In this document: positions 1,129 to 64,000 of the stretch, one piece after another
Layout of the letters: each line of letters starts with the position of its first letter
How positions within the stretch are numbered: position 1 is the first letter of the stretch
Source of the DNA: Macrostomum lignano
Lineage: Eukaryota
NCBI GenBank assembly: GCA_002269645.1
Contig: NIVC01001375.1
Coordinates: 62,001 to 126,000 of the forward strand
Direction: 5' to 3'
Length of the DNA: 64,000 bases
Notes under the pieces: model-generated
What the model was told of the DNA's origin: nothing
Databases searched by the model: none
Seen by the model: the letters and a program-made list of their open reading frames with translations, nothing else
Translations under genes and position numbers: made by a program

Positions 1129-1214
1129 TAAGTAGCTAGTGCGACAATTTCCTTAGCATTATAGTGGCTCCTTTAAAATTCGCTTACTTTCACGTTTGAA
1201 ATTGTGTAAATTTT

Positions 1215-3510: not shown

Positions 3511-3561
3511 TGTTTAGTAGTTTTGTGTTTTTTAGGTGTTTTAATAAAAAAAATCTTTTTT

Positions 3562-7100: not shown

Positions 7101-7717
7101 CATTGCGCTTCTTTTATGTTTAGCAGTTTCGTGTTTTTAAGGTGTTTTAATAAAAAAAATCTTTTTTGCACTACTAAGATTCGAACCCAGGTCGCTACAT
7201 TAGCATTCCAGTCTGTTCGCATCAGGGCTATCTTTTTTCAATTGGAGAAAATGAATTGTGGCCCTTATAATTCAATTCTTACAGCAAGTCAATTGGAGTA
7301 GAAAGTTATGACATAATCAATTTCTCAGTCAGCCAGAATCAGTCTCAATTTAAGTTGGCAATATGGTTACGCAATTTCATTCAAGTCGTGTGTGTATTTC
7401 TTTGACACTGTTTTCAACTTGTTGTGATGCAATCTTTATCACAATCGGAATTCAGTCAGTCAGTTTTTTCTCTAGCATTCTTACAATGTATTTCAGGTCG
7501 AAAGAGCTGCTTGACCTTTGCAAAAAAGCATGTTTTTCGAATATTTAATCCCTTTAACATTGGGCAATTTCTTAGCCAAGATGCATGTACCGTCCCAGGA
7601 AAATTTCTGATCGAATGGTGCAAGTTTGAAGAAAATCGGTTGAGCCAATTTTTCTGAAATCAATCGCATACCCACATACCCACATACCCACAGACAACTC
7701 ATTTTTAGTATATAGGA
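4108..7717 (-). mobile_element. Non-autonomous Helitron copy (3610 bp)
   Basis: Same termini (TC...hairpin-CTAG) and same internal module order as its neighbours. Confidence 0.85.
4802..7110. repeat. 23-bp minisatellite, second Helitron copy
   Basis: Same unit as 1215-3510. Confidence 0.95.
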
Positions 7718-10700
7718 CTAGCAATCTTCGCCCCCCGATGGGGGACATCTGGATTGAATCCTTGTTCTTTACAAATAAAGACTCCAAGAGAAATAACAAA
7801 TAGACAGGGTCATAAAGCCTTCATGAAAAAGCAACAGACATTTCCTCTAAAAACAAAACATCCCAAGACAGCAAGCATCCCCAGACAGCATTCAAGCATC
7901 GATCCCTAAATAGCAAACATCACCCAGACTGCAAGCATTCCATAGATAGCAAGCATCCACCCGATAGCAAGAAACCCCAGATAGCAAGCATCCCCCAGAT
8001 AGCAAGCATCCCCCAGACCCCAGATAGCAAGCATCCGCCAGATAGCAAGCATCCCCCAGATAGCAAGCATCCGCCAGATAGCAAGCATCCCCCAGATAGC
8101 AAGCATCCCCCAGATAGCAAGCATCCCCCAGATAGCAAGCATCCCCAAGATAGCAAGCATCCCCCAGACCGCAAGCAACCCCAGATAGCAAGCATAACCT
8201 GGATACAAAGAGACCTTATAGATATCTAGCAACCCCCTCTCAAGATAGCAAGTACCCTCCACCCCCCAAGAGCAAGCATCTCCCAATAGCAAGTAACCCC
8301 AGTAGCAAGCATCCTTCCGGTAGCAAGCATCCCACCAATAGCAAGCATCCCTCAGATAGCAAGCATCCATCAGATAGCAAGTATCCCCCTGATAGCAAGT
8401 ATCTATCCTTAAATAGCAATCCTCCAACAGAGAACAAGTAGCTAGTGCAACAATTTCCTTAGCTTTATAGTGGCTCCGTTTTGTTTGGCATGACACTTTT
8501 TATGTTTGAAACGGTGTCTCTTTTATGTTTGAAACGGTGGCTCTTTTATGTTTGAAATTGTGGCTCTTCTATGTTTGACATGACGTCTCTTCTATGTTTG
8601 ACATGGTGGCTCTTTAATGTTCGACATGATGGCTCTTCTATGTTTGCCATGGCGGCCCTTTTACGTTTAAAATGGTGTCTCTGTTATGTTTGACATGGTG
8701 GCTCAGTTGTTTGACATGGTGGCTCAGTTGTTTGACATGGTGGCTCAGTTGTTTGACATGGTGGCTCAGTTGTTTGACATGGTGGCTCAGTTGTTTGACA
8801 TGGTGGCTCAGTTGTTTGACATGGTGGCTCAGTTGTTTGACATGGTGGCTCAGTTGTTTGACATGGAGTTACGTATATGTTTGACATGGTGGCTCTTTTA
8901 TGTTCGACATGGTGGCACTTTTATGTTTGGCATAGTGGCTCTTTTATATTTGACATGATGGCTATTTTATATTCGACATGTTGCTCTTTTATGTTTGACA
9001 CGGAGTCACGTATATGTTTGACGAAATGGCTCTTTAATGTTCGCAATGTTGGCCCTCTTATGTTTGACATGGAGTCACATATATGTTTCACATGGTGGCG
9101 CTTTAATGTTTGACATGGAGTCACGTATATGTTTGACATGGTGGCTCTTTTATGTTCGACATGGTGCTCTTTTATGTTTGGCATGGTGGCTCTGTTATGT
9201 TTGACATGGTGGCTCAGTTGTTTGACATGGTGGCTCTTTAATGTTTGACATGGAGTCACGTATATGTTTGACATGGTGGCTCTTTTATGTTTGACATAGT
9301 GGCTCTTTAATGTTCGCCATGGTGGCTTTTTTATGTTCGACATGGTGCTCTTTTATGTTTGACATGGTGGCACTTTAATGTTTGACATGGTGGCTCTTTA
9401 ATGTTTGACATGGTAGCTCTTTAATGTTTGACATGGTGGCTCTTTAATGTTTGACATGGTGGCTCTTTAATGTTTGACATGGTGGCTCTTTAATGTTTGA
9501 AATGGTGGCTCTTTATTGTTCGACATGGTGGCTCTTTTTTCGACATGGTGGCTCTTTAATGTTCGACATGGTGGCTCTTTTAGGTTCGAAATGGTGGCTC
9601 TTTTATGTTTGACATGGTGGCTCTTTAATGTTTGACATGGTGGCTCTTTAATGTTAAATGTTAAATGTTTGACATGGTGGCTCATTAATGTTTGACATGG
9701 TGGCTCTTTAATGTTTGACATGGTAGCTCTTTAATGTTTGACATGGTGGCTCTTTAATGTTTGACATGGTGGCTCTTTAATGTTTGACATGGTGGCTCTT
9801 TAATGTTTGACATGGTGGCTCTTTAATGTTTGACATGATGGCTCTTTAATGTTTGACATGGTGGCTCTTTTATGTTTGACATGGTGGCTCTTTAATGTTT
9901 GACATGGTGGCTCTTAAATGTTTGACATGGTGGCTCTTTAATGTTTGACATGGTGGCTCTTTAATGTTTGAAATGGTGGCTCTTTATTGTTCGACATGGT
10001 GGCTCTTTTAGGTTCGACATAGTGGCTCTTTAGTGTTTGACAATGTGGCTCTTAATGTTTTACATGGTGGCTCTTTAATGTTCGACATGGTGGCTCTTTT
10101 ATGTTCGACATGGTGGCTCTTTAATGTTTGACATGGTTTTTCTTTTATGTTTGACATGGTAGCTCATTTATGTTCGACATGGTGGCTCTTTAATGTTTGA
10201 CATGGAGTCATGTATATGTTTGACATGGTGGCTCTTTAATGTTTGACATGGTGGCTCTTTAATGTTTGACATGGTGGCTCTTTAATGTTTGACATGGTGG
10301 CTCTTTAATGTTTGACATGGTGACTCGTTAATGTTAGACATGGTGGCTCTTTTATGTTTGACCTGGTGGCACCTTAATGTCTGTAATGATGGCTCTTTAA
10401 TGTTCGACATGGTGCCTCTTTAATGTTTGACATGGTGGCTCTTTATTGTTAAACATGGTGGCTGTTTAATTTTTGACATGGTGGCTCTTTATTGTTCGAC
10501 ATGGTGGCTCTTTAATGTTCGAAATGGTGGCTCTTTAATGTTCGAAATAGTGGCTCTTTTATGTTCAACATGGTGGCTCTTTAATGTTCGAAATGGTGGC
10601 TGTTTAATGTTCGAAATGGTGGCTCTTTTATGTTTGACATAAAGTCACTTGTATGTTTTACATGGTGCCTCTTAAATATTAGACATGGTGGCTTATTTAG

Positions 10701-11401
10701 GTTTGACATGGTGGCTCTTTTATGTTTGACCAGGTAACTCTTTTATGTTCGATATGTTGGCTCTTTAATGTTCGACATGGTGGCTCTTCTATGTTTGACA
10801 TTGCACTTCTTTTATGTTTAGCAGTTTTTTGTTTTTAAGGTGTTTTAATAAAAAAAATCTATTTTGCACTACTAAGATTCGAACCCAGGTCGCTACATTA
10901 GCATTCCAGTCTGTTCGCACCAGGGCTATCTTTTTTCAATTGGAGAACATGAATTGTGGCCCTTATAATTCAATTCTTACAGCAAGTCAATTGGAGCAAA
11001 AAGTTATGACATAATCAATTTCTCAGTCAGCCAGTATCAGTCTCAATTTAAGTTGGCAATATGGTTACGCAATTTCAATTCAAGTCGTGTGTGCGTTTCT
11101 TTGACACTGTTTTCAACTTGTTGTGATGCAATCTTTATCACAATCGGAATTCAGCCAGTCAGTTTTTTTCTCTAGCATTCTTACAATGCATTTCAAGTGG
11201 AAAATTTGGCTTGACCTTTGCAAAAAAGCATGTTTTTCGAATATTTAATCCCTTTAACATTGAGCAATTTCTTAGCCAAGATGCATGTACCGTCCCAGGA
11301 AAATTTCTGATCGAATGGTGCAAGTTTGAAGAAAATCGGTTGAGCCAATTTTTCTGAAATCTATCGCATACCCACAGACAACTCATTTTTAGTATATAGG
11401 A
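7718..11401 (-). mobile_element. Non-autonomous Helitron copy (3684 bp), outermost 5' end of the array
   Basis: 5' TC at 11401-11400 is preceded on the minus strand by A (11402), matching the Helitron A^T insertion rule. 3' CTAG at 7721-7718 with hairpin. Confidence 0.85.
8480..10810. repeat. 23-bp minisatellite, third Helitron copy, with a 21-bp sub-array at ~8688-8865
   Basis: Same unit, plus a homogeneous TTTGACATGGTGGCTCAGTTG block. Confidence 0.95.
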
Positions 11402-13963: not shown

Positions 13964-16250
13964 ATGAAGGCTTTCTGTTTGCTATTGGCGCTGGTGATTT
14001 TGGAACCAATTATAGGTAAGCAACAATTAAAATGCATCTACAGCAACCGCAGATCCATAGAAGCGTAGTAGCACTACAACATCTGTGGCAATATGCATGC
14101 AAGAAAGTAACTCTAAAATCAACTAATTCACGAAAGAAGCTGCAGAGGTGTTGCCTTCATCAGCAGCGAACTGCACAAAGACACAAAGGTACAGGCGCGT
14201 CCGCTCGGCCCTGCCCGTCTCGCTCGACCGAATTGTGAGCAGTGACGTCATCATCGAGACCAATGTGGCTTCCGTGCCAGACTGTCTGCTCATGTGCGGA
14301 ATGAGAACCTGCGCTGTGGCGGTTGTTCCCAATGGCGCCTCCACCTGCCAACTCGTCTTCATCAACGATGCGTCGCAGTCTCCGGGACCGACGGCGAGTC
14401 ACGTGACGCGAGTTCTGGGCTCCGAGGCGGGCGAATCCGTGTGGACGGTGGACAATCTCGAGCAGCTGATCCGGGAGAGGGCCTACAGGCTCGATGTCGT
14501 GTTCAAGAGTGAGTAGCAGCTGCCAGTGCAGATATCAGTATCCTTATATTTTGCTGGCGTATTCGACATGTAATCAATTGGATGCAGCTGAGATCAGAAG
14601 GTCTTTTTTTGATGCATTGTTAATTACAGACTCGTCCAAGGGCAGCAGCGGGTCCGTCCAGCACCTGCAGATCGGCGTCACCGGCTGCTACCGCATCGAG
14701 TTTGCCGGAGCTAGAGGCGGCGCTAAGTTTGCCGCAGCGACCGTCGGAGGCCACGGAGCCACCGCGGCTGCCAACTTCAGCTTGACGGTCGGAACCCGAC
14801 TGGACATCGCCGTCGGACAGGCGGGTGGCAACGCATCGGTGAACGGCTTCGTGTAGACAAGCGACGGGTTGGAGAGTCTGCTGCCACTGGCTGCAGGCGG
14901 CGGCGGTGAAGGCGCGACTGGTAGAATCGGTGAGCTTTTCTCCTAGTCACGACTCCATTTTTATAAGGATATTAGTGGGTGTACTCTCTGAATGCAAATT
15001 CTGCAAATGCAGGCTTTCCGGGCGAAGGAGGACGTAATGGAGGCGATTTGCTCGGTAATAACTGGAAACTGATGGGCGTTTCACCCACCACTGATGGGTG
15101 AAACTGACGGAGGCGGGAGCGCTGGAGGCAGAAGAGGAGCTCCTGGCGCCGGCGGCGGCTTTAGCGGAGGCGGTGGAAGTCTCGGATTCGGCCACGCTGG
15201 ATCGGAGGCGGCGGCTCCGCCTGTGAAGAGTTTCTTCGAGTGGTGATCAGTCACCCGAAAACTCCCACTTCCAGACCCTAAGCCTGGGAAAAAAATTCCG
15301 TGATCACTTACTGTTGCGGGCTCCTCTTCTTTGTCGCGCGTGTCTGTAGAGCTTGTCTTCGCAAAGGTGTTCCTCCTGGGGTAGTCTTCCTGAAGTCTAA
15401 AATCGGCCGAAGGTGAGAGCGTAACAATCAACTCGACGTCGCAGTATTCCTCGAGTGCAGAAATCAATATCAACGATGTGCCCTACTAACAAAATTAAAT
15501 TCTATAACAACACGAGGTCCTCCAAAAGGGGCGTCTTCTTCTAGAACTAACGGAATCGGAGTCTTGTGCTCCTATCGGTCAATCTAGGATAATCCAAGAT
15601 CAATCACTCGATAATCCTCTAAGGGTATCGGAATCGGTCCGCAGATCCTATCCAATCCTTTAGGAAAATGGGAGGCCTCAACTTCAATGAACTCAGTTAA
15701 AAAACTGATCAGTAACGTCCGGGAATAAAATTGCTCTCAGTAATCCAAATAACAAAGGCTCGAACACGGCTTACCGAGCGGTATTCTTTCCTCAGAGATG
15801 TAGCCTCTTTGGCTGCTCTTGCAGAGTCCAAAGATCTTCGGAGGCTGCTCCGAGTCTGAGATTTTTAGCGCTAATTTTAGCTTGTACTCGTTTAGTAAAA
15901 TTTTGCGAGAATCAGGCTATTTTTAGTAGGTGACCATTTCGCGTTTTGGAAATTTGACCTCTCAAAATTGAATAGAATACAATAGATACCATGGTAATTT
16001 GAGCATCGAGTACCATATTTGGGGTTCTAAATTAAATGTTGCAAAGGATGATGTGGTCTTTTAAAAATAGAGTATGACAACTCATCATTTTAGATTCGAA
16101 TTTTCGCATTTTTACGTTACTACTTATAGTAGTTTACTTATACCGTATTTGGAGATCTCTACACCTGCATCGGCGGCAGCGGCCGCATCACCGTCACTGG
16201 CGGCAACTCAGACAGAGAGCAGGGAATTGCATGAGTGGCTGTGCGGCTGC
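13964..16250 (+). pseudogene. Second, disrupted copy of the signal peptide + Cys (PAN-like) + ALK/LTK Gly-rich gene
   Basis: Exons: 13964-14015 (MKAFCLLLALVILEPII), 14164-14508, 14630-14929 (TGCYRIEFAGARGG...LDIAVGQAG, in-frame TAG at 14854-14856), and 15013 onward (internal deletion, TGA at 15099, frameshift, 940-bp insertion, resuming at 16164). Splice phases are consistent. Confidence 0.8.
15224..16163. mobile_element. Probable solo LTR (940 bp)
   Basis: TG...CA ends with short inverted termini (TGAAGAG / CTCTACA) and a 4-bp duplication CCTG (15220-15223 and 16164-16167). Removing it restores GGGSACIGGSGRITVTGGNSDREQG, collinear with the intact paralog. Confidence 0.75.
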
Positions 16251-18008: not shown

Positions 18009-20495
18009 ATGTCCGACGCAAAAGAGTACGTTTCCAAGAAACAGATCCCGCAACTCTTTGAGGTAAGTATGAAAATAACAAAGAAAAATATTTAAACAGC
18101 AAGAAATTTACTATTTTATCCTAAACTCTTAACCGCAGTGCCTCATGACCGGCCTGATGTACCACAGACCATCGGATCACATTGCCTACCTGCAGCAGTG
18201 CCTGGACAAGATCAAAGTACAGGGTGTCTCCGGAGTGCGCTGGGACCTCTTCCTTGAGGCTAAGCGGGCCAAGACGCCGCTGCCCCCGGTGACGCCACCA
18301 AGGTCCGCAAAGCGATCGGCCAGCCACAGTAAGTGAAATTGGCTGCAAATTCTGCTACGAGCTACAGTCATGCTTAATACTTGCTACTAAGTGTATATGT
18401 ATGATGAGTCTAAAAACCAAAGACTGTTAAGATTCCTGTTCGACAAGATTTCTGTTGTCTTTTTGTTAGACAAGCAATAGTTTGGCCACCACCGAACCAT
18501 GGTATTGATAACACGAGCCATAGATAAACAATGAAGTTGATGAACAGGCCACAGATAAACAATGAAAGCCAATCCTCACGGCAGAGAGTAGGTACACACT
18601 GCCAGACAATGAGAGTAATAGTTACTCATAAAGGTGTATGTACTTGCGTACGCATCCATGCGCATGTTGACCTTAATTACCCCCTAGCTAGCTCTTCATT
18701 TGTCTCCGAACAAACTTTTTACCAGCCTCATCGGTGTCTGATTTGGGCGAAAAGAAGCCGGTCCTACCGCCCATCGGTGGCGGCGGAAACTCCGCCAATT
18801 ACGAAGCTGTCGAAGACGCCAGCCGACAGCAGGTCGCAGCGGCCGCCGCCGTAGCCGTCAGAGAATCGTCGGCCCTCTCCGACTCGTCTAATTTGCAGAA
18901 GCTGACGGCGCCGCTCACCTGCCCGCTAGTGCTGGTGCTGGGCGGTCCCGGCAGCGGCAAGCGGGTCATCTGCCGCCACCTGGCCCAGCGGTACGGCTTC
19001 GCCAGCTTGTGCGTCGGTGACCTGGTCCGCAACGGCATCCGGGATTCGCGCGACGCCTCGCGTCAACGCTGGGCAGTGGCGGCGGCCGCTTTCGAACGCG
19101 GCGACGCTGTGCCAGAAGACCTGCTGCTGCCGGCGCTGATCGACGCCGTCAATCAATTGGTGGCCGACGGACGCTGCCGAGGCGTGTTTGTTGAAGGCTA
19201 CCCGCGCTCGCCTGAGCAGGTCGACGCCATTGCTGAGCACGTAAGTGTAGAGCGTCTTGCTGGAATTTAGGTGGAGGGCACCCTGACGTCTTTATCGTTT
19301 TTATCTGAATAGAAAGACAGAGGCGCACTCCCTATAGTTGCTACTACTGTTGCACTAAGAAGTACTACTCGTACTTCTGTTGGTAAACGCTCATGGGCAT
19401 CGAAGACGTTGCAGCGGAGATTCACAGCCGGAATTGCATAAAATTTGTGCACCGGTCGCACATGAGCATCCTCAATCCGCTACTCAACTCCACTGTTCTG
19501 AACTCAGATCAAGCAGCCAGACCGTGCCCTGCTGCTCGACTTTGAGGAGGACCTGCTTCAGGAGCGGCTGCTTCGGCGATACCACCGCCTCGGCGCCATC
19601 GAGGACCAGCCCGCTAACATCGGCCGCCGCATCGGCCACTTCCGGTCGGCCGGCCTGCCAGCCTGTCGAATCTACGACGAGGCGCGTCGACTTGTTGTTG
19701 TGCCGGTTGACGAGGACCTTGACGATGCCTCCGTGTTTGCCGAGGCTGCCCGAGCAATGGACGCCTTCTACGATCCTGTCGACACCAGCGCCGGGCCCAA
19801 GAAGGCGCCAAAGGCCGGCGAGGGGGGCGCCGACTCGAGAGACGACACCGAAGAAGAGTCGGAGGCTGCCGCGGTGTCTGCTTCGGCCGTCACGTACATC
19901 GAGGAGATCGAAAACGTGCCCGAGCCGGTGAAGCGGCCGTCGGACCTGCCGCAGTGCCCGATAGTGCTGGTGATGGGCGGCCCGGGCAGCGGCAGGTCCA
20001 GTCAGCTGCGCCGAGTCGCCGAGCGCTACGCGGGCTTCGTGCACATCAACGCCTCCGAGGAGGCGCGCAACAGGTCGCTTGGTGCCGGAGCCAACGCCGC
20101 CTGGTCCGCGCTAGTCGACATCGCCACTCAGGGCGACCTGGACGAGGAAGTTGACGCAGCAGAATTGCGTCGACTGTTGACAGAAAAAGGCCGCGGAGCG
20201 AATTGCATCCTGCTGGAGGGCTACCCGATCAACGCCAACCAGCTGCGCGACCTGTACAAAACCGTTGGCCAGCCCGACCTCACCGTGCTGCTGGACTGCG
20301 AGGAGACCTACATGGTGCGCCGGCTGTTGGCCAGGGGCCGCGAGCAGGGCGGCCTGGGTGACAACATTGCCGCCGTGTCAAAGCGGATGTCCTATTTTAA
20401 GGAGCACACGCTGCCTGTAGTGCGGCACTTTGATCTTGCCGGCAAGCTGTGCATTGTGAGTCTGCCTATGTATGTCTATCTATCCATCTATCTAT

Positions 20496-20530
<35 letters not shown>

Positions 20531-20535
20531 CACTG

Positions 20536-20573
<38 letters not shown>

Positions 20574-20584
20574 CCTATCTATCC

Positions 20585-20675
<91 letters not shown>

Positions 20676-21530
20676 CAACATCTTTCCCTTAATTTCCAAG
20701 GTACTCGGCGATCGAGATGACAGCGAGGTGTTTTACGACCTCGCCGGGCTATTTGACTACGTCTTCTTCAACCAGAAGCCGCAGCACGTGCAGCAAGACG
20801 AGACCAAGGCTGCCGAGACAATTCAGGCCGCTTTTGAAGGCTTTCTAACCAGACAGCAGTTCGCTGAGAACAATGCCGGCAAGGAGGGGCCAGCGGATCC
20901 CAGCAAGGATGCGATGGATGAGGACACGGCGGCTGAGACTATTCAGGCGGCATTCGATGGCTTCAAGACTAGGGAGGAGTTTGTGGCTGCTCAGGTGAGT
21001 AGGCTGTTACTTTTTTACTATTGGTAGGCCACTGCACTAATGCGCTAAGACTCTCAAAGACACTCTCAAACACTCGGACATTAAGACACTCGGACATTGA
21101 GACACTCTGATATCAAGAGACTCTGACATTAAGACACTCTGACATTGAGACACTCTGACATTGAGACACTCTGACATTGAGACACTCTGACATTAAGACA
21201 CTGACATTACATGTAAGACACTCGGACGTTAAGACACTCTGCCATTAAGACACTCGGACACTGAGACATTTGAGTGACGATATTAAAATTATTGGTTTTA
21301 TTAAATTGAAGAAATTTTCATTTCCTTCTTAGTATTCTAATATTCTACTTACCGTTTAGTAGTAAAGGCGCACATGATTATCATAAAATGTACGTCACAT
21401 GGAATTCCAGCAATCCGAGCAGCAGAATGGCGAGGAGGCGGCCAACTCAACTGAGGAGCAGCAGGCGGCCACGAAAATTCAAGCAAATTTCCGGGGCTAT
21501 CAAACACGCAAAAATCTCGCGAAGAAATGA
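18009..21530 (+). CDS. AK5: Adenylate kinase 5-like protein (docking domain + two AK domains + three IQ-like motifs), ~706 aa
   Basis: join(18009-18062,18139-18328,18726-19240,19508-20455,20701-20994,21411-21530); all introns GT-AG with matching phases. The N-terminus DAKEYVSKKQIPQLFE-CLMTGLMYHRPSDHIAYLQQCL resembles the AK5 docking domain. P-loops GGPGSGK and GGPGSGR; EGYP motifs. Confidence 0.88.
20472..20674. repeat. (CTAT)n microsatellite filling AK5 intron 4
   Basis: Direct reading. Confidence 0.97.
21070..21270. repeat. 16-bp minisatellite (GACACTCTGACATTGA)n in AK5 intron 5
   Basis: About a dozen degenerate units. Confidence 0.9.
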
Positions 21531-22609: not shown

Positions 22610-26066
<3,457 letters not shown>

Positions 26067-26979
26067 GTTGCAAGTCGAAGGCAAAAAAGCAGGTTAAAAA
26101 TTTTATAGTTCTTATATAGCTGCTTGTTTAGAGGATTCTGGGCGGCCTGCTAATGCGGTACCGCAGCCGCGTGATGAGTCATCAGGGTGGTGCAGGGAGC
26201 CGGTGGGTGCCAGCCCAGCGCACTGGCAGTGTCTCCCTCCGTCTTTCTTTTTCGCTGCCAAAATTTCTTTCCCGAATTCGTCTCTGGATGCCCGGTCGAA
26301 GCGTTCGAAATGGGAGCAGGAAAGCAAGAGAGAGAGGGGAACGTGACTTCTAGGATTTCTGTCTGGGCCCAGTCAGCCGACGAATTCCATATTTGGCGTT
26401 GCGTTCCAACGGTGGCGCGCGTCGCGATGACGAAGCCGCTTTCAGAACCAGCGTTGTTGGAAAAGAGAACTTTTTTGTTAACTTGCTCTTTATCTATATG
26501 CTGGACAATATTTTTTGAGGTGGGGAATCCTGTGGTCTTGGGATTTTTATTATGCAGCTGTTGGCTGCTGGCGTATGAGGACCGCTGCAGAATTGTAAAT
26601 GGGCCCGCGGTGATTTTGCAACTGTGCTTATCCCTTTGAGCTTACATCACGTGAGCGGAGAAGGATATACGATAAGAAAGTGCGCGTAAAGAAACAACTG
26701 AGAAAGTGTCTTTAAAAAAGAATGATAAATAATTAACCCATACTCGTATTCCCAGAGTAGACATGCATGCATTGATACGAGCTAGTATGCGTTGACTGGG
26801 CCTGATATGCATAGTGTGAGCTACGCAAAAAGGCATTTCCGTTTTGGCGTTTGGGTATAGTACTACATGCTGGATAGACATTGCTCGTATGGGTTAATTG
26901 CGTAATTTTTTTAGTCAATTAGACTTAGCTTAAAATAGAATGGATTGCTGATGACATTTGATCATTGAGACTGATCATT

Positions 26980-27605
26980 GTCGACTCATTCTCGACTCAT
27001 TCTCGACTCATTCTCCGACTCATTCTCGACTCATTCTCGACTCATTCTCGGCTCATTCTCGACTTATTCTCGACTCATTCTCGACTCATTCTCGACTCAT
27101 TCTCAGCTCATTCTCTACTCATTCTTGATCAATTCTCAAGTCATTCATGATCCAATCTCGACTTATTCTCGACTCATTCTCTTCTCATTCTCGACTCATT
27201 CTCGACTTTTTTTACTAGAGGCAGGGGGGTTGTGTGCACCTGCATGGCGCACTTTAAGCGACATAGGCACACAACCGGCGAGAGGCATTACTGGCCATTC
27301 CGCCGACTCCCCTGAGCAGGCACACAAGCGCGCGGATACGTACGCAGGCACACACTCACACAGGAGTGTACAGCGGCCCTAACTTTATATTATCGTTAGG
27401 CATGTACACTTCACTGCGCCTTGGGGGGTTGGCTCTCAAGGCCGTTAATTGCACGAGCAGAGCCAAGCCGAGATTCCAATTCAGCCCCAAATTAATGTGA
27501 CTGCACTTGGGATCGAGCCTGGGTCGCTGGCACACCAGAGCAGCTGCGCTACCGCTGGGCTACGGCCCCCTCTCATTCTCGACTCATTCTCAACTCATTC
27601 TCAAG
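26980..27605. repeat. 11-bp minisatellite (CGACTCATTCT)n split by a SINE
   Basis: Units at 26980-27206 and 27571-27605. Confidence 0.9.
27207..27570 (-). mobile_element. tRNA-derived SINE (~365 bp)
   Basis: Minus strand starts GGGGGCCGTAGCCCAGCGGTAG (A box), has GGCTCGATCCC (B-box-like), then a unique body and an A7 tail. Confidence 0.8.
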
Positions 27606-28233
27606 TTAGTAATTCTGTAGCCGTGGTCCTCCTAAATCGACTCATTCGAAGAGATGTTAGAATTATTTGCTGTTTGAGAAACATGACGTAATAGTTGTTC
27701 GCAATGAAGTTTAAATTTAATCAGTTTTATTAATTCATCAAAAAAATACTTATAAATTTGGAGAATGGCGGTGCACAGTTCTCGCGCACTACGACAAAAT
27801 GTTCATTTACAGTTTACAGTTAGTCGAATAAAACTATTAAATCGGGGCAGTTTAGTTGAACAATTACTGACAGCTAGTTCATGTTGTACAGAATTTTGCT
27901 TTACATTAATATGCTATGTTTATGCACATGTATCAGGTGCAGGGCTAGAGATTATTGTTTTATAATAGTCGCAAAGTTGTTAAAAGAGGGCCATTGGGGT
28001 GAAGACGGTGACAGCTGCTGGTCTATTGCAAAGGACAGATCGTGTAGATAAATGAATGAATTATGAACATTATAAACTAGCAAGTCAGAGTCTTCTGGAG
28101 TTTCGAGCTCTTGAATCAGGATTCGCTATGTACAAATAAACAGAACTTATGCAGGGCAGACGCACTGTGCCTGGGGCATGCAAAACAGATTCGTACAAAA
28201 ACTCGGGATTTCATGAAAAGTAATTTTCGAATT

Positions 28234-31011
28234 TTAAATCAAAATTCTGTCTAGGCTATACGTCCATCTCCTCGTAGACCTCCTGCTGTTCCTCCTGTTT
28301 GGGCGGCTGCAGCGCCGGGTTCCTCTCCGGCAGCGGCGGCGGAACGTCGTCAGCAGCGCCGGCCGGGTACTGGGCGAAGCCGGACCGGCTGCGCTGTAGC
28401 AGCGGGTGATCGCCAAGACCGAACTCCTGGCTGCGAGCTCGGCCGTAGCCGCCGCCGCCGCCGCCGCCCCGCCAGCAGCTGGTCCAGTGGCCAGCATGGA
28501 AGTCAGGGCGTCGGTGCTCTGAGCCGACCGCATCGCACCTCTCGGATCGATTGGCAGGCTGGTGGAGAACGGATCGGAGGCTGACTGCCGCATAGCGGAT
28601 TGGCTCATGCTGTGAATTCGCTGCATTTGGTGCAGTTGCATCTGTTGGATCTGGTTCACCTGCTGCATCTGCTGCAACTGCTGCTGCAGATTCGACGCAG
28701 ATGCGTTCAAGCTCGGCCGCGAACCATTCAGCGTGGTGCTGCCATTGCGTTTAGTAAATCGACGACTCTCGGGCTTTCTGGCGCTCTGAAATCGGGCGCC
28801 TCTGCTGTTGGGATCCTCGGTATCCAGATAGGTGTAGGAGTTGTAATCGTCCATTCCAGCTGCGCCGGTCTTGACCTCGTCGCGTCTGGCGCGTCGTTGC
28901 AACAGGCAGCAGACTAGTAGTGCGATGAGGGCCAGCGCCACCACTGGGACAATAACTGCTATTGAGATGTGCGCAGGCGACAGTTGTTGCTGCTCGGCTC
29001 GCGATGGCATGAACACACGACAGTTAGTTGGACTTTCAACATCGCCTGACGTTGGTCCTTGAAGTATGACGCAAAACCGATGCCGTTGAAGAGTGTCTAC
29101 GTGGAAGACTAACGAGTTGACAGAAATTAGCGCCTCTTGCACGCTATTTCTCAGCTGGTAGTCCGCCTCGGGGCCGTATCTAACGATGTAGCGATCGAAT
29201 CGGCTGGCGAGGCCGCTGGCATTGATGGTCAGGCGCACCAGTAGCTCGTCACTTAGCTCCATGGCGAGCCGGATGTCCAGAGGGTAAGGAAATGCCGTCG
29301 GCGTCGGTGCCGGAGTCGACGGCGGTTCGCGCATCTTGCAGGAGGCTGGGATTGGAGCTCCGCTGGGACAGAAGTCGGCGCCGGTTAAGTCAGACCAAGC
29401 TCGGCCACGCAAATTAAGAGGCTGGTTGCAGAGGACGCCGGTTAGAGCGTCGTTGCCGGCCTCTGCACGCATCCTGTTGAGCAGCCAGACCAGAGCGCAG
29501 TCACAGCGCCAAGGATTGCCAGCGAGTCCGATTTTGGACAAGCTGGTCAGGCCAGCCAGAGTGCAGTTGTCCAGGCTGGACAAGCTGTTGTCCTGCAGCT
29601 GCACTATGGCATTCGGCGCCAGGCCGTAGAGACTTGCTGAGTTAAGCTCCACGATTTTGTTGTTACGCAAACTCAGCAAATCGAGGCGCGACCAGGCAAA
29701 TTGAAAGTCCGGCACGTTGGTAATGACATTGTAGTCCAACAGAAGTCGCCGCAGCTGCTGATTACCAACTAGGCCTGGCCACACGGTGTCATCAAGGCCG
29801 CTGCGCATTTCTGCACCTTGGCCGCTTAGAGTAAGATTTCGCAGAGCAGGTAATTTGGTCAGCACCTCTGACCAGCTAGCTTGTTGCGGATCCGTCACTG
29901 AGCGGACGAGGACCCGCGAAGCCGGAATAGTCAGGCTGAGTTCGGCCAGTCGGCCCAGTCGTTGAAATGCTGTCACCTCGATGAAATTGATCTGCGCATC
30001 GTCCAGCTTCAAAGAGTAGAGTCGGGACCGCTCGTGAAAGTCGCCAACCCGGATGTTGGACACGAGCGTTTTGCGAGCCTCCAATAGTTCTAGCGACTCT
30101 AGCTGGCCTATATTGTTGGGCATCTCTTTCATCGGGTTGCTGTTCAGGAACAGGCGTTGCAAAGCGCTCATCGAGCCCAGGCCAGGAAGACCATCGGCAC
30201 CAAGCTTATTACCGTTTAGTTCAAGCACTTTCAGGGTTTTAGCGGCACTGGCAAAGCTTCGAAGGTCTAATAGAGTTAGTTGATTATTCGCAAAGTTCAT
30301 GAGAGTCAGCCGACTGAAGCTTGAATTGGGGTTCACTATTGTTGTGAGGCCGCAATTAGTCATAGTGAGGTTTTCCACTGTGCCAATCTGGCGTAGCAAG
30401 CTAGTCATGTAGGTCGATGCGGGATTCTTGCACAATTCGATAACTCTAAGGCTGGATAGACTAGTAAATGCGCTGCTTTCGATGCTGACAATGTCGGCAT
30501 TGATGAGACGCACGATTGACAGCTTAGTGCCCGAAACGAAGTCATTTGGCAAGTGGCCAAGTTTCACGTTTTCCAGATGCAAGAATGTCAAGCTGGACAA
30601 AGTACTCAAAAGTTGTTCCGCCTTAACCGCAGTTGGCTGCATAGCGGAGGCCACAACCATGAGCTCAGTGAGAAGGTGCAGATTTCGAAACGCTTGCCCG
30701 CTCAAATTAGCAATTGGAACTGTGGTGCGAATGCTCAAAAAAGTGAGCGAGTCGGTCAGGTTGGCAAAACTGTCGGGGCCGATGTAAGCGATCGGACACG
30801 AGTCCATGTAGAATATCTTCGCATTCAGACTGGCGTCGACGGTGGGCACTTCAGTGACTTCGCTACCTGAGCAGGTGATCATGCGAACCTGTTGAGGGAG
30901 CTGCTCCAATCGACAGTAGCGCGAGCTTTCTGTTGTGACATGGATTGCGCTGTGCTGCGCCGAAAGCAGCAACAGCAATAGCAGAAGCGGCCCTGGCAAT
31001 GATGAAGGCAT
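28234..31011 (-). CDS. Intronless LRR type-I transmembrane protein (signal peptide, LRRNT, many LRRs, LRRCT, FN3-like region, TM, cytoplasmic tail)
   Basis: Start MPSSLPGPLLLLLLLLSA at 31011; LxxLxLxxN repeats; LRRCT NPWRCDCALVWL...C..P..LRG...FC; TM ISIAVIVPVVALALIALLVCCLL. The true C-terminus is probably in another frame ending at 28256. Confidence 0.9.
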   Translation of the reverse strand: MPSSLPGPLLLLLLLLSAQHSAIHVTTESSRYCRLEQLPQQVRMITCSGSEVTEVPTVDASLNAKIFYMDSCPIAYIGPDSFANLTDSLTFLSIRTTVPIANLSGQAFRNLHLLTELMVVASAMQPTAVKAEQLLSTLSSLTFLHLENVKLGHLPNDFVSGTKLSIVRLINADIVSIESSAFTSLSSLRVIELCKNPASTYMTSLLRQIGTVENLTMTNCGLTTIVNPNSSFSRLTLMNFANNQLTLLDLRSFASAAKTLKVLELNGNKLGADGLPGLGSMSALQRLFLNSNPMKEMPNNIGQLESLELLEARKTLVSNIRVGDFHERSRLYSLKLDDAQINFIEVTAFQRLGRLAELSLTIPASRVLVRSVTDPQQASWSEVLTKLPALRNLTLSGQGAEMRSGLDDTVWPGLVGNQQLRRLLLDYNVITNVPDFQFAWSRLDLLSLRNNKIVELNSASLYGLAPNAIVQLQDNSLSSLDNCTLAGLTSLSKIGLAGNPWRCDCALVWLLNRMRAEAGNDALTGVLCNQPLNLRGRAWSDLTGADFCPSGAPIPASCKMREPPSTPAPTPTAFPYPLDIRLAMELSDELLVRLTINASGLASRFDRYIVRYGPEADYQLRNSVQEALISVNSLVFHVDTLQRHRFCVILQGPTSGDVESPTNCRVFMPSRAEQQQLSPAHISIAVIVPVVALALIALLVCCLLQRRARRDEVKTGAAGMDDYNSYTYLDTEDPNSRGARFQSARKPESRRFTKRNGSTTLNGSRPSLNASASNLQQQLQQMQQVNQIQQMQLHQMQRIHSMSQSAMRQSASDPFSTSLPIDPRGAMRSAQSTDALTSMLATGPAAGGAAAAAAATAELAARSSVLAITRCYSAAGPASPSTRPALLTTFRRRCRRGTRRCSRPNRRNSRRSTRRWTYSLDRILI

Positions 31012-34190: not shown

Positions 34191-35768
34191 TAGCTGAAAC
34201 AGTCTGAATAAAAAAGTTATTCATAGTTTCGATCGCTACAATAATGCTGTAATGACACGCATTTAGGAGGCACTACCTACTACAATGTATAAGCCCTTAA
34301 GTTAATTACCTACATCTCTAACTATAAAAATCAAAATGTACATATAAAAAAGGATGCCCGCCTTCAGTGCACTTTAAATTAACTTCTGTTTTTATTGTAC
34401 GAGCGCTATGTAATGAAAATTTTGATTTCAATGTTAGCCAACTCTAGCGGGGATCGACATTATTAAATTTTCGCATTCTAGTTTTATTCACTTATATATA
34501 CTACTACAAGTAGAACATTTTTAGTTCTTTAGAGCTTCTTTAAAGCTCGTTTCTTCTTTAAATTTATCATGAGTCCGATAAAAAATTAATTTGAATACTT
34601 GGTCAGTCCTCTTTTTGTTTTTGTTGAGCATGATGTTTCTTATTGATTTATTTACTAAAGTATAATTGGGTTTCTGTTATCCTTTATTTAGTTAATTATT
34701 TGCTTAAGTATATTTGGGTTTTTTATCCTTTTTTAATTAAAATTTATCAGGTAAGGAATAAAAAATCATTATTACAGTTCTGATCATCCTAATAAAAATC
34801 TTCAGAAAAAGTACAATTTTCTTGTATTTTCTTTTCTGTGCATAAAAAATTCTTTGCTTAATTTTGTCACAACATTATATATATATAGGTACTGTTAGGT
34901 ACTGTTCCCCTCGCTGCACCTCACCAGTGCATCTGCTTCCATCTGCATATTTATAACAGATATATATTTATCTGTTAAATATCTATTTACTTTTTCACCT
35001 TTATTATTACTAGCAATAACAAAAACTAAGATAGCTATAGTCAGAACTCTAAAACAAAAATTTAAAGCTGCATAAATAATTGCTGGACGAAAGTTGAACA
35101 GAGAGCTGAAGCTATATAAGGTAAGTAACATAGGCAGAAACTAAGCCAAATTAGGGCACTAAAAATGAGTTTCATGATAATTTAATTTTTCAGATTCAAC
35201 AATATTTTTAAGACGAAAATTCTCGTGAGATGGGATCATACTTCATTTTGATATGATATGCAGTACAAAATTAAAGGATAAAACAAATCAATTCTGATTT
35301 TACCAGCACTTCAACAATTTATATATACTAAAATAAAAAACAAGTAAAAAATCGTTTCTTTTTTTAAAATCGAAGGAAAATCCAGATGAAATATACGACA
35401 ACAGAGTAGTATTGAGACTTTTTTCTAGAGGTAGCGGCTATAAATTATTCGGCGCTAAACCTTGGCTTAGTGTTGCTTTCATTTCATCGTCTAATGTGAA
35501 GTAAAAAGCAACAGTTTAACAGACTTTACATTATCGTGGTTACTATTTAAAAATATAAAAACGCGTTCTTAAAATACGTTTTTTGGATGAGAATATACAA
35601 ATGTAGTTATTATGTTAGGAATAAAAATATATATATTTAAAATGTAATCATACTATTCATCTGTTTTAATCATCTCGCCACTTTGTTTTACTGTAAGAAT
35701 GTTTGTATTGTTATTTAAATGCTAATTTTCGCGACAAAATTCAGACCTCCCTCTTTCGACGAAGCACT

Positions 35769-58353
<22,585 letters not shown>

Positions 58354-59099
58354 ATTGCTTCGAGAAAGGACTTCTTAAACGGGCCCTTTTTTCTTATACA
58401 AAAAAGCGCACAGAGCTCGCCTTTCGATGTTACGTGCTGCTATTGTGTGCTTTTCGCGCCTTACTATTTGCTATATCTGTGTCGCTATCTTTCTTTTTAC
58501 CACAGTTTCATGCAGAAGTTCGTTTTCGACTTTTTTTCCTAACGCATAGCATCCGTGTTTTGCTATCGATTGGGTCCAAAATCTATTTTTAATAAGCATA
58601 TCTGTGCTCTGCGCCTGTGTCTGCTATATTACGTAATCTCTCTCGTGTTTGTTTTAATTGTACAAGATTTCAATTAATACAGAATTGTGATTTAATTCAA
58701 TTGTGATTTTTTGTCAAGTATTAATATCTGTTTTATTAATTTTTTTCTGCCTTAAATGTCGAAATTTTTTCAGGAGCCCAGGCTCCTCTGTTTCGTATTA
58801 ACTATGCTCATTTAGCTTTCTAAGGTTTTTCCGATGTGGGCTCCTTGGGGACCATATTTTTCTGCTGTTTAAATTTGTTATGACACACTGCCACGCCTCC
58901 TGATTATGCTTGCTTTGTATTATTATTTTCTAAATATGTTGGCCTTACTCGTTTGCGTGCTATTGAGTGTCTTGTCTTGCTCTGCTTTTTCCTTCGTAAT
59001 TTGTAGCAATTTTTTTCGAGTACCTGTTGAATTTTGATTGCTGTTTTTTTCTTACGCTTTGGCGTTCGGCTCTGACTTTTAGCTGGGTCATTTGCATCA

Positions 59100-59450
59100 G
59101 TAGGTCAGTCCTAAACCTGTCAGTAGGTCAGTCCCTAGAACTGACAGGTCAGTCCTAAACTGTCAGTAGGTCAGTCCTAAAACTGTCAGTAGGTCAGTCT
59201 TAAAACTGTCAGGTCAGTCCTAAAACTGTCAGGTCAGTCCTAAAACTGTCGGGTCAGTCCTAAAACTGTCAGGTCAGTCCTAAAACTGTCAGTAGGTCAG
59301 TCCTAAAACTGTCAGGTCAGTCCTAAAACTGTCAGTAGGTCAGTCCTAAAACTGTCAGGTCAGTCCTAAAACTGTCAGTAGGTCATTCCTAAAACTGTCA
59401 GTAGGTCAGTCCCTAAAACTGTCAGTAGGTCAGTCCCTAAAACTGTCAGC
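59100..59450. repeat. 20/23-bp minisatellite (AGGTCAGTCCTAAAACTGTC[AGT])n
   Basis: Direct reading. Confidence 0.93.
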
Positions 59451-60109
59451 AGAGATGTCAGGCACTAACCTGCTGACCACTGGATGAATGTCAGTGAATA
59501 TTGATAAAACTTCAGTTTAGAAAGAGCTGAAAAGTTTCAATTGCCACAAGCCATGCTACGCCTATTAATCATTCAATTACCTTTTGTTAAATAAAAATAT
59601 TTATTATTATGCTTATTGAACTTATTCATAATCATAGTTATTGTGAACTTTATGAAATTATTGATCGAAGTCTGCACTTCAAAGTGCTCTTGGCCAGTTA
59701 AATTTATTAATTAGGCTATGCACATGTTTTAACCAACTCATTTTTAATTTAATTTGTCATTTTCAATCAACGGCAACTGTTTGTCTTCCACACGCGAGCC
59801 GACTGGAACCTGTTTTGTCCTTTTTTGTCTCTTACCGCTAAAATATAAGTGCCTTTATTCTAACATATATTTATGCTCATATAAACTTGTGCATAGATTA
59901 TTATTGCATCGCAGTCGTGTGTGTTGCAAATCTTGATTAAATCTATCAATTATTTATTCCGCAATTACCGCATCCGCCATCACTGGTTTTGTTGGGCTCA
60001 GCGTGTTTTGCTAACAATGGATAGTTTGAAATTTTCCTTTTGAGTTTATTCGTTCCTGCTCTTGGCTGCATAATTGCTGCTTTTCTGCTTTCATTTGCAA
60101 TTCCTTTCT

Positions 60110-60840
60110 CAGGGTGTCTCAGTACTTGAGGAGGGTGTCTCAATGGAGGGTGTCTCAGTACTTGAGGAAGGTGTCTCAGTAATTGTAGAGGGTGTCTCAG
60201 TAATTGAGGAAGGTGTCTCAGTAATTGAGGAGGGTGTCTCAGTAATTGTAGAGGGTGTCTCAGTAATTGAGGAGGGTGTCTCAGTAATTGAGTAGGGTGT
60301 CTCAGTAATTGATGAGGGTGTCTCAGTAATTGATGAGGGTGTCTTAGTACTTGAGGAGGGTGTCTCAATTGAGGGTGTCTCAGTACTTGAGGAGGGTGTC
60401 TCAGTAATTGAAGAGGTTGTCTCAGTAATTGAGGAGGGTGTCTCAATGGAGGGTGTCTCAGTAATTGAAGAGGTTGTCTCAGTACTTGAGGAGGGTGTCT
60501 CAATTGAGGGTGTCTCAGTACTTGAGGAGGGTGTCTCAGTAATTGAAGAGGTTGTCTCAGTACTTGAGGAGGGTGTCTCAATTGAGGGTGTCTCAATAAT
60601 TGAAGAGGTTGTCTCAGTAATTGAAGAGGTTGTCTCAGTAATTGAGGAGGGTGTCTCAATGGAGGGTGTCTCAGTAATTGAGTAGGGTGTCTCAGTAATT
60701 GAGTAGGGTGTCTCAGTAATTGAGGAGGGTGTCTCAGTAATTGAGGAGGGTGTCTCAGTAATTGAGCAGGGTGTCTCAGTAATTGAGGAGGGTGTCTCCG
60801 TAATTGAGGAGGGTGTCTCAGCACTTGAGGCGGGTGTCCT
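60110..60840. repeat. 21/15-bp minisatellite (GAGGGTGTCTCAGTAATTGAG)n
   Basis: Direct reading. Confidence 0.95.
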
Positions 60841-61504
60841 TCAATAATCTTGACCTTCATGACCGGGCAGCAGTAATCTTACTGGTTGAATCATAAAATG
60901 TTATAATGTCATTGTTTATGATCTGCAGTGTGCTGCAGCAAAGAATTTAAGTGCAAATCAATTGACGTCACGGCAGGTAAGGCAGCCCTTTGTGGGCCAT
61001 AGTATACAAACAGGAATGTGTCAAGACAGTGGTGGCAAAGAGGCAAAGAACTATTATTCAACAGTTTGTGGCGAGTGATTTTGGTCGCGTTTATTATTTG
61101 GAGGCTTGAAATGTCATCCCACCCGAACACCTGCTGGTTCTTACCCGCTGCCTTGGTTTATGGCAATTTATTTTGATGGCCTGACAATGCCGCAGGGAGG
61201 GGGGGTACGCAGGTTTACTAGAATCCAGGCCAATGTAAACACAATCGGGAAGCCCGCATTCAAGAAGAGAGATCCGATAAGAATACTCATATTTCTGGTC
61301 AGCAGTTAATGTTGCTGGTTGGACCAGAAATATGCCAATAAATTTGGGGAATGGGACACGGCTACAGTAGGCTGGGATTGGAGGAGAATTCTAAATTATT
61401 AGGTCGTCGTTTGGCAACAATAGAGAAAAACAGACTCGCAATATAGAGTCCGTAGAAATCAGAGCAGATGTCTAAAGTACATCATTGTTGAGGCTGAGTT
61501 CAAA

Positions 61505-61932
61505 TGACAGAGGGGGCGCCAGCTACAGAGTGGGCGCCAGCTGCAGAAAGGGCGCCAGCTACAGAGGGGGCGCCAGCTGCAGAAGGGGGCGCCAGCTGCA
61601 GAAGGGGGCGCCAGCTACAAAGGGGGCGCCAGCTGCAGAAGGGGGCGCCAGCTACAGAGGGGGCAGACTACAGAGGGGGCAGACTACAGAGGGGGCAGAC
61701 TACAGAGGGGGCAGACTACAGAGGGGGCAGACTACAGAGGGGGCAGACTACAGAGGGGGCAGACTACAGAGGGGGCAGACTACAGAGGGGGCAGACTACA
61801 GAGGGGGCAGACTACAGAGGGGGCAGACTACAGAGGGGGCAGACTACAGAGGGGGCAGACTACAGAGGGGGCAGACTACAGAGGGGGCAGACTACAGAGG
61901 GGGCAGACTACAGAGGGGGCAGACTACAGAGG
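61505..61932. repeat. Compound minisatellite: (GGGGGCGCCAGCTRCAGA) units followed by 16-bp (GGGGGCAGACTACAGA)n
   Basis: Direct reading. Confidence 0.93.
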
Positions 61933-62300
61933 CCGCTGTAGCTGCTGCTGGAAGCGGGCTGGAGTCGAGCTGCTTGTCAGTGAACGCATTGTACAGCGTG
62001 CTTGACCAACCTCCTTAATGAAAAAATTCAGGTGTTCAAAACTTCTGTGTAGCGGTTTTCGCTCACGCAGTGACAGCAGGCTGCGGACAAGATCTGCATT
62101 TTCCTGTAGACAGCAGATCAGGTCACGGACGTTCGCCATGGAATGATTAATTGTGCCACTTTAAGAGCTGAACTGGCGAAAATGTCTCCATCAATCACTG
62201 AGAGCGGAGGCTGGGATTCCATCATTGGTACGTTCGCGATGGATGCTTAGGGGCCGTCATCTTGATTGATCTATTTGAAGAATAGAGCTAGCTTCGAGAT

Positions 62301-63110
62301 GGGAGATACTGGGATGGGAGATACTGAGATGGGAGATACTGAGATGGGAGATACTCAGAGATTGAGATGGGAGATACTCAGAGATTGAGATGGGAGATAC
62401 TCAGAGATTGAGATGGGAGATACTCAGAGACTGAGATGGGAGATACTCAGAGACTGAGATGGGAGATACACAGAGATTGAGATGGAAGATACTCAGAGAC
62501 TGAGATGAGAGATACTCAGAAATTGAGATGGGAGGTACTGAGATGGGAGATACTAAGAGACTGGGAAGGAAAATACTGAGATAGGAGATACTCAGAGATT
62601 GAGATTGGAGATACTAAGAGACTGGGATGGGAAATACTGAGATAGGAGATACTCAGAGACTGAGATGGGAGATACTGAGATGGGAGATACTGAGATGGGA
62701 GTTACTCAGAGATTGAGATGGGAGATACTCAGAGATTGAGATGGGAGATACTCAGAGATTGAGATGGGAGATACTCAGAGATTGAGATGGGAGATACTCA
62801 GAGACTGAGATGGGAGATACTGAGATGGGAAATACTCAGAGATTGAGATGGGAGATACTCAGAGATTGAGATGGGAGATACTCAGAGATTGAGATGGGAA
62901 ATACTGAGATAGGAGATACTCAGAGATTGAAATGGGAGATACTCAGAGATTGAACTGGGAGATACTCAGAGATTGAGATGTGAGATACTGAGATGGGAGA
63001 TACTGAGATGGGAGATACTGAGATGGGAGATACTGAGATGGGAGATACTGAGATGGGAGATACTGAGATGGGAGATACTGAGATGGGAGTTACTCAGAGA
63101 TTAAGATGGG
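62301..63110. repeat. 15/23-bp minisatellite (GAGATGGGAGATACT[CAGAGATT])n
   Basis: Direct reading. Confidence 0.95.
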
Positions 63111-63252
63111 AGATACGAAGACTAAGACAGAAGACGGGAGGAGAGAATTGAAAAACGGAGACAGCAAGACCAGCAGCACCTTACATCTCTTTACGAGTAT
63201 CTTACTGAGAGTAGTCAGCAAAGAAAACATATTTGCATGATGATTCACTAGT

Positions 63253-63258
63253 TTTATT
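63253..63258 (-). terminator. Polyadenylation signal AATAAA of the putative neuropeptide gene
   Basis: TTTATT on the + strand, downstream of the minus-strand stop at 63362. Confidence 0.5.
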
Positions 63259-63361
63259 TCTCAGTCAATTTTGTTGATTCGAAGACAGAGAGAAAAGCGT
63301 TCACGGCTATTCTAAGCTTCCACTCGGTGCAGATCTCAGTTTGTTCAAATCATTGCGCAAT

Positions 63362-63607
63362 TCAGAAGTCAGCAAATCTCTTAAAGTCGGCGAACCGCTT
63401 CTTGAAGTCGGCGAATCTCTTAAAGTCGGCGAATCTCTTCTTGAAGTCGGCGAATCTCTTAAAGTCGGCGAATCTCTTCTTGAAGTCGGCGAATCTTTTT
63501 CTAAAATCGGCGAAACGCTTTGTTGAAACCGAACTCTCCAGTTCTTGCTCGGCGGCCGACACAGCGCTGTTTGAGTCTGAAAAGGTTTTTGCTGTACTTT
63601 GAATCCT
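63362..63607 (-). CDS. Terminal exon of a putative neuropeptide precursor with 8 copies of FADF between KR/KKR/RKR sites
   Basis: Frame reads ...SAVSAAEQELESSVSTKRFADFRKRFADFKKRFADFKRFADFKKRFADFKRFADFKKRFADFKRFADF-stop. Differences between copies are synonymous or K/R. AATAAA lies ~105 nt after the stop. Candidate acceptors at 63607 or 63576; the 5' boundary is uncertain. Confidence 0.75.
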   Translation of the reverse strand, partial: RIQSTAKTFSDSNSAVSAAEQELESSVSTKRFADFRKRFADFKKRFADFKRFADFKKRFADFKRFADFKKRFADFKRFADF

Positions 63608-63612
63608 CTGAT

Positions 63613-64000
<388 letters not shown>

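Follow-up and report, generated by a model that had tools for sequence, protein, structure and literature searches.

A two-exon gene of Macrostomum lignano encodes a candidate multi-copy prohormone for the tetrapeptide FADF

The window analysed here is a stretch of 64,000 nucleotides of contig NIVC01001375.1 (positions 62,001 to 126,000 of the forward strand) in GCA_002269645.1, the Mlig_3_7 assembly of Macrostomum lignano (PMC5730564). Its large open reading frames encode LRR, adenylate-kinase, TEAD-interaction (YAP-type) and ALK/LTK Gly-rich domains, a set that points to an animal, and a 925-aa LRR membrane protein is encoded in it. A YAP/Yorkie-like WW-domain gene with a 580-aa product occupies window positions 35733..58353 on the plus strand. 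It is followed on the minus strand by a two-exon annotated gene with a 108-aa product, which is the subject of this work. The second exon of this gene lies in the window, and the first was found in locus L003, which comprises the locus of the 580-aa YAP-like product with 10-kb flanks. L003 matches the window without a difference over 40001..64000 and extends 4.3 kb beyond position 64000; window coordinates equal L003 coordinates plus 25732. In the deposited annotation, the gene for the 108-aa product is called at L003 37630..39297 on the minus strand. The features of the gene, listed from 5' to 3', are as follows.

Exon 1: window-equivalent 65029..64918, minus strand; 918-1029 nt past position 64000, with the ATG at L003 39297.
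Intron: 1341 nt, minus strand; phase 1, GT..AG, mostly a (AGAGTAGAGT)-type minisatellite and an (AGAC)n microsatellite.
(AGAC)n microsatellite: 63612..64000, minus strand; within the intron and running past the window edge.
3' part of the intron: 63577..64000, minus strand; acceptor ccttttcag, of which cag is 63579..63577.
Exon 2: 63576..63362, minus strand; acceptor ccttttcag/AC at window 63576.
5' part of exon 2: 63521..63576, minus strand; two bases finish the Asp38 codon, then 18 codons give the acidic, Ser-rich SNSAVSAAEQELESSVST.
FADF array: 63365..63520, minus strand; eight tandem units of K-R-F-A-D-F with none or one further K or R in front, 52 codons in units of 18 or 21 bp.
TGA stop: 63362..63364, minus strand; abuts the last FADF, and the annotated gene ends here (L003 37630 is window 63362).
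3' UTR: 63259..63361, minus strand; extends to the polyadenylation signal.
AATAAA polyadenylation signal: 63258..63253, minus strand; 103 nt past the stop (L003 37521..37526) and kept at all three loci described below.

Exon 1 contributes 112 nt of open reading frame, encoding MLRTTQLSTMGHSSAVCTRYLGLMAMLVVLVAAATAH plus one base, and ends at the donor CACG/gtgag. Splicing in silico (ATG...CACG/gtgag to ttttcag/AC...TGA) gave a reading frame of 327 nt and 108 aa. This reconstruction agreed exactly with the annotated gene, as judged on coordinates and length only because the reconstructed products are absent from the protein collection. The range of the annotated gene model agreed at all three loci, and the length agreed at this locus. 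An earlier note, made from the window alone, had marked 63362..63607 as a candidate new neuropeptide precursor and had placed the signal-peptide exon beyond position 64000, where exon 1 was indeed located. The marked range holds exon 2 and also includes 31 nt of intron, the exon beginning at 63576. The AATAAA that the note had reported downstream of the copies was recovered, as was the acidic Ser-rich spacer ahead of them, DSNSAVSAAEQELESSVST, which has 4 acidic residues and 6 Ser among 19.

The genome paper describes the deposited annotation as consisting of RNA-seq/transcript-assembly models only (StringTie, TACO and the mapped de novo transcriptome), with open reading frames called with TransDecoder. 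A spliced minus-strand transcript is therefore implied. RNA-seq-derived models at three loci, together with the conserved AATAAA, imply that the gene makes a spliced, polyadenylated mRNA. The reservation voiced in the earlier note, that a spliced minus-strand transcript with a signal peptide might not exist, is thereby answered by a GenBank model of RNA-seq origin.

The N-terminus of the precursor comprises a basic n-region, Arg19 and a 15-residue hydrophobic core, YLGLMAMLVVLVAAA. The Kyte-Doolittle profile peaked at 3.0 (11-residue window) over residues 21-33. The core is followed by A-T-A/H-D, with Ala at positions -3 and -1 of the predicted cleavage point. The n-region is long (19 residues) and would be reduced to 9 residues if translation began at Met10. 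By hydropathy and the -3/-1 rule only, the N-terminus is signal-peptide-like and follows the pattern of a cleavable signal peptide. A start at exon 2 by spliced-leader trans-splicing was also considered and rejected: the ATG in which the M. lignano spliced leader presumably ends would lie in another frame, and exon 2 has neither an in-frame Met nor a signal peptide. Such a start is unnecessary, because an annotated exon 1 exists.

Translation of the minus strand from 63520 to 63365 gave eight FADF copies, each with KR, KKR or RKR ahead of it. Following SDSNSAVSAAEQELESSVST, the units run KRFADF, RKRFADF, KKRFADF, KRFADF, KKRFADF, KRFADF, KKRFADF and KRFADF, the last one immediately before the stop. 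The reading of this minisatellite as eight (K/R)KR-FADF units ending at the stop, first made in the earlier note, is thus borne out by the translation and by Tandem Repeats Finder. The latter detected periods of 21 and 39 at 63365..63520, period 39 giving 3.9 copies with a 90% match. Period 39 is a better fit than period 21, so that KKRFADF-KRFADF, a superunit of 13 codons, is the true unit. The 52 residues of the array polypeptide include 20 Lys/Arg, 16 Phe and 8 Asp.

The sole residue variation among the eight copies is at the optional third basic position, which is empty, K or R. All other differences between copies are silent, as previously stated, and the codon sets are exactly those given before: TTC/TTT for Phe, GCC/GCT for Ala, GAC/GAT for Asp and AGA/CGT/CGG for Arg, with AAG/AAA for Lys. 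Gly is absent ahead of every basic site in the array and from the repeat as a whole. Because no Gly precedes any basic site, the array holds no amidation donor, in line with the non-amidated product predicted earlier. An amphipathic helix or coiled coil was tried as a description of the array and rejected, the Phe spacing of 3, 3, 3 and 4 residues being presumably unfit for a stable hydrophobic stripe.

The M. lignano genome is neopolyploid, and the gene was found in three syntenic copies. At each of the three loci, LRR-TM is followed by YAP and YAP by the FADF gene, which has 8, 6 and 7 units at L003, L004 and L002, respectively. L004 (NIVC01000381.1; gene 26373..27735) is nearly identical to L003, and L002 (NIVC01000013.1; gene 26453..28544) is 2-9% diverged in introns and flanks. 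Between L003 and L002, all 112 nt of exon 1 are the same, and divergence is 2-4% in the introns and 9% over 300 nt in the 3' region. The spacer carries one substitution, Ser to Ala, and the FADF codons carry silent changes only (GCC/GCA, GAC/GAT and TTC/TTT). Intron length varies (1341, 1075 and 1667 nt at the three loci) while the exons stay conserved. Because paralogue divergence is low, this exon conservation is weak evidence when taken alone. A TGA directly follows the last unit at all three loci.

The annotated products at L003, L004 and L002 are 108, 82 and 140 aa long, and the reconstructed splices encode 108, 95 and 101 aa. The 82 aa of L004 equal 95 minus one 13-residue (39-nt) superunit, which suggests a collapsed or shorter repeat in the transcript. 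The 140 aa of L002 equal 101 plus a 39-codon in-frame 5' extension to the end of the locus, which suggests a 5'-partial ORF call. An in-frame ATG (MNLGKLPNHF...) is found 38 codons before the MLRTTQ start, at L003 39411 on the minus strand (approximately window-equivalent 65143). It is present in L003 and L004, and L002 has AAT there. Because it is missing from the diverged L002, this codon is probably not the true start and either belongs to the 5' UTR or represents an upstream-ATG polymorphism.

The window abounds in minisatellites, several reading frames of the FADF array are open and no homologue was found in searches. All three observations would fit a neutral minisatellite that is open by chance in a non-coding or mis-annotated transcript, the peptide being an artefact. 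The substitution pattern points the other way. In a six-frame test, the coding frame kept the amino acid at the whole-codon level in all 19 nucleotide differences, which were pooled over the three loci and are not independent. Counted per site, 17 of 19 were kept in the coding frame; the two apparent exceptions fall on step two of the AGA-to-CGT change, after which Arg is still encoded. The other five frames kept between 0 and 13 of the 19. Even when six frames and about 15 arrays are allowed for, the finding that every difference is silent or K/R in one single frame has a P value below approximately 1e-4. The other arrays tested lacked such a pattern: in four other in-frame minisatellites of the window, used as a control, the silent fraction was 0.06-0.56 in every frame, and several of them shift frame between copies. 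For these four, the contrast that the earlier note drew with the other repeats of the window therefore holds.

A random substitution in the array would keep FADF and the K/R class with a probability of 0.21-0.33, depending on transition bias, and a random substitution within the FADF codons alone would be silent with a probability of 0.17-0.25. The FADF codons of the three loci have undergone at least 7 independent silent events and 0 non-silent ones (P about 4e-6 to 6e-5), and the Arg and Lys codons contribute several further silent events. Arg at -1 (AGA, CGT or CGG) and Lys at -2 (AAG or AAA) were kept in 21 of the 21 units of the three loci. That they persist through synonymous change speaks for selection on the cleavage site itself. 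Also at odds with a chance reading frame, the array joins in phase, through a canonical GT..AG intron, to an ATG-initiated exon with the signal-peptide-like sequence, the stop comes right after the last unit in 3/3 loci, and the paralogue likewise shows silent changes only. We consider a neutral origin of the array highly improbable. Judged by its codons, the array is protein-coding, and purifying selection acts on both the peptide and the K-R sites.

Homology searches were made with the products of this gene. The exon-2 product gave no match at E<=10 in a word-indexed search of 5.8 billion clustered proteins. When 1.84 billion representative proteins were scanned in full with HMMER, 30 weak matches were returned, all to unrelated low-complexity repeats except for P0013, which is described below. 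A pattern scan of JGI metagenome contigs revealed no relative of the precursor, and no orthologue beyond M. lignano was found in the protein and JGI metagenome searches, so that deep conservation is not evident. The protein collection is without the gene's own products, and the searches were blind to the M. lignano annotations of the gene. Exact look-up of the 66-aa in-window ORF gave no record, and the reconstructed 108, 82, 140, 95 and 101-aa products are all missing from the protein collection, although the positions of the genes are indexed. There was no significant match for the product in Pfam (best E-value 6.3) or in the PDB (best E-value 0.07), and Rfam found nothing over the whole window.

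In the literature, no publication linking FADF to a neuropeptide was found. The strings KRFADF and FADFK(K)R occurred in one unrelated human-protein paper only, and FADF in combination with peptide returned unrelated uses only (the fadF gene and an AP2 motif). The string FADF is absent from the planarian prohormone supplementary tables (PMC2953531). Neither the protein nor the literature searches produced a match to an already described precursor, the other outcome that the earlier note had named as fatal to its proposal; an earlier description may exist in McVeigh et al. 2009, who reportedly screened ESTs of M. lignano for neuropeptides. The candidate put forward in that note accordingly retains its multi-copy prohormone architecture and has no described counterpart in the sources searched. 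Its gene model was already in the deposited genome, and the novelty therefore lies in the interpretation and not in the gene.

We propose that this 108-aa two-exon gene is probably a lineage-specific multi-copy prohormone that releases non-amidated FADF, most likely as a neuronal neuropeptide. Upon entry into the secretory pathway, the signal peptide would be removed. A PC2-type convertase would then cut following each KR, and a carboxypeptidase E/D-type enzyme would trim the basic residues. Processing would release up to eight free-acid Phe-Ala-Asp-Phe peptides and one acidic spacer peptide, HDSNSAVSAAEQELESSVST, as secreted signals. The computed monoisotopic mass of FADF is 498.2114, with [M+H]+ at 499.2187. 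In planarians, pc2 has been proven to act as a prohormone convertase (PMC2953531). A PC2 homologue of M. lignano shows expression in the nervous system, and animals do not survive its knock-down; in hatchlings, knock-down of pc2 is lethal and prevents reproductive organs from developing (PMC4490696). Because the M. lignano nervous system expresses this homologue, the processing machinery exists in the animal.

Lineage-specific multi-copy precursors turn up routinely in mined transcriptomes (PMC6188537, PMC2953531). Clade-specific multi-copy peptide (MCP) neuropeptide precursors have been catalogued in planarians, among 51 prohormones (PMC2953531), and 14 novel MCP types were described in xenacoelomorphs (PMC6188537). 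The FADF precursor resembles them in being a small preproprotein with a predicted signal peptide, an acidic spacer and identical tandem peptides parted by dibasic sites, in its restriction to one lineage and in a copy number that varies between paralogues. Unlike these precursors, which were studied with expression data and peptide detection, FADF is known here from genes alone, its sequence matches none of theirs and it is not amidated.

Other known systems share some of these properties. The FMRFamide-like peptides of flatworms and molluscs (FLPs; YIRFamide, GYIRFamide and FMRFamide) are likewise very short, aromatic and multi-copy, with a KR-Phe/Tyr cleavage context. FLPs end in Arg-Phe-amide, encoded as RFG plus a basic residue, whereas FADF is acidic and has neither the C-terminal Arg-Phe nor the Gly amidation donor. 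To our knowledge, a non-amidated acidic tetrapeptide is unusual among flatworm neuropeptides. Similarly to what is proposed for the FADF precursor, the vertebrate proenkephalin and pro-TRH contain repeated units of 3-5 residues that PC1/3 or PC2 excises at KR/KKR and carboxypeptidase E trims, and the enkephalins, like FADF, lack amidation and carry an aromatic terminus. The FADF precursor is related to them neither in sequence nor by evolution; it is far smaller and without a Cys-rich N-domain.

The one match set apart in the HMMER scan, P0013 (JGI 3300031709, contig Ga0307385_10070000, 1.25 kb; L005 40..948), is an orphan 302-aa metatranscriptome precursor. It combines a signal peptide and a Cys-loop region with about 12 copies of MGPQ[DS]WA[DN]F, which are KR-flanked and non-amidated. 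As in the FADF precursor, the repeats are KR-flanked and non-amidated and end in aromatic-Ala-Asp-Phe. They differ in being 9-residue peptides, and the similarity is confined to ADF and the basic residues; it is likely a chance convergence. When used as a query against 5.8 billion proteins, P0013 found only itself. From its layout, P0013 looks like another undescribed multi-copy peptide precursor.

The possibility that FADF is a relative of achatin had been raised in the earlier note. Achatins start with Gly-aromatic and end in Asp or Asn, and GFGN is common across bilaterians (PMC6188537). A divergent member of this family (GFAD, GFGD or GFGN, with D-Phe at position 2) would share with FADF a non-amidated tetrapeptide, a KR-spaced multi-copy precursor and the string F-A-D. 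FADF has no Gly-aromatic start (G[FYM]..), the peptide being F-A-D-F, and no Asp/Asn at the C-terminal basic site, the C-terminus being Phe with Asp penultimate. Its F-A-D is out of register with that of achatin, shifted by one position, and there is no similarity outside the repeat and no family match. Because the N-terminal Gly and the C-terminal Asp/Asn are both absent, the achatin link is unsupported, and we regard membership of this family as scarcely credible.

FADF, which is acidic and non-amidated and has an aromatic residue at either end, might instead found a new family of secreted signalling tetrapeptides that is not related to achatin, is confined to macrostomids and acts on its own orphan receptor; this is a tentative proposal, and we hold it to be doubtful. 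If it were true, FADF could be a neuropeptide or an exocrine, ejaculate-borne allohormone in M. lignano, a reciprocally mating hermaphrodite, and the new family could possibly carry a post-translational L-to-D change. Such an isomerisation, with a D-residue in FADF, is pure speculation.

A different reading of the same gene is a secreted product that is not a neuropeptide. It could be an unprocessed cationic, Phe-rich polypeptide, or it could yield gland-cell peptides with adhesive, antimicrobial, prostate/seminal-fluid or pheromone roles; the acidic spacer would then neutralise the cationic part during storage. The signal-peptide-like N-terminus and the coding selection fit this reading equally well. 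The restriction to one lineage and the 8, 6 and 7 units at the three loci are also common in fast-evolving secreted repeat proteins, and many precursors of antimicrobial peptides likewise place a cationic repeat after an anionic propiece. Other features of the array are harder to accommodate. Lys-Arg stands before 21 of 21 units with three different Arg codons, as a convertase site would need and bulk charge would not. Identical four-residue cores parted by basic residues only are a hallmark of multi-copy precursors, and KR followed by Phe is a cleavage context in use in FMRFamide-type precursors. Taken jointly, these non-neuropeptide products appear unlikely but deserve serious consideration next to the multi-copy neuropeptide prohormone that we favour.

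As a flatworm model amenable to transgenesis and RNAi, M. lignano serves research on regeneration, stem cells and sexual conflict, and no dedicated neuropeptide survey of this species was found in the searchable literature. As FADF is short, repeated eight-fold, easily synthesised and of clear mass signature, it is a directly testable candidate ligand, and it could therefore be used for receptor deorphanisation and for the study of pc2-dependent phenotypes in M. lignano. Lineage-specific multi-copy prohormones are well known; FADF would extend their catalogue and leave the concept unchanged. Annotation pipelines often set minimum ORF-length cut-offs and mask tandem repeats, which puts small peptide genes at risk. 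Silent-only variation inside a minisatellite can pick out such genes.

The remainder of the window contains several further repeats and genes. The annotated gene at 22610..24322 on the minus strand encodes 570 aa, largely acidic EQQEQATD and PEQAAEQTKPTEEQ repeats, and has no Pfam match; unlike in the FADF array, about half of the differences between its copies are non-synonymous. At 18734..21027 on the plus strand, an annotated 715-aa product contains two adenylate-kinase domains and IQ-like AAETIQAAF motifs, and a microsatellite-bearing intron between its exons reads as LSIYLSIY in raw ORFs. An ORF at 14494..14856 on the plus strand matches the PF12810 ALK/LTK glycine-rich domain with 24.8 bits against a cut-off of 24.5 and may represent one exon of a receptor or secreted protein. 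The YAP-like gene spans 22.6 kb here, compared with 8.5 kb for the paralogue on NIVC01000013.1. One of its introns, at 39304..53332, holds a 14-kb satellite of about 620 copies of the 23-bp unit GGGCGAGAGAGAGAGTGAGTGAA, with extreme GC and AT skew. Finally, window positions 1..10801 consist of three near-identical blocks, each with an 18-bp array of CCCCAGATAGCAAGCATC followed by approximately 50-100 copies of the 23-bp TTTAATGTTTGACATGGTGGCTC, which indicates a higher-order segmental repeat.
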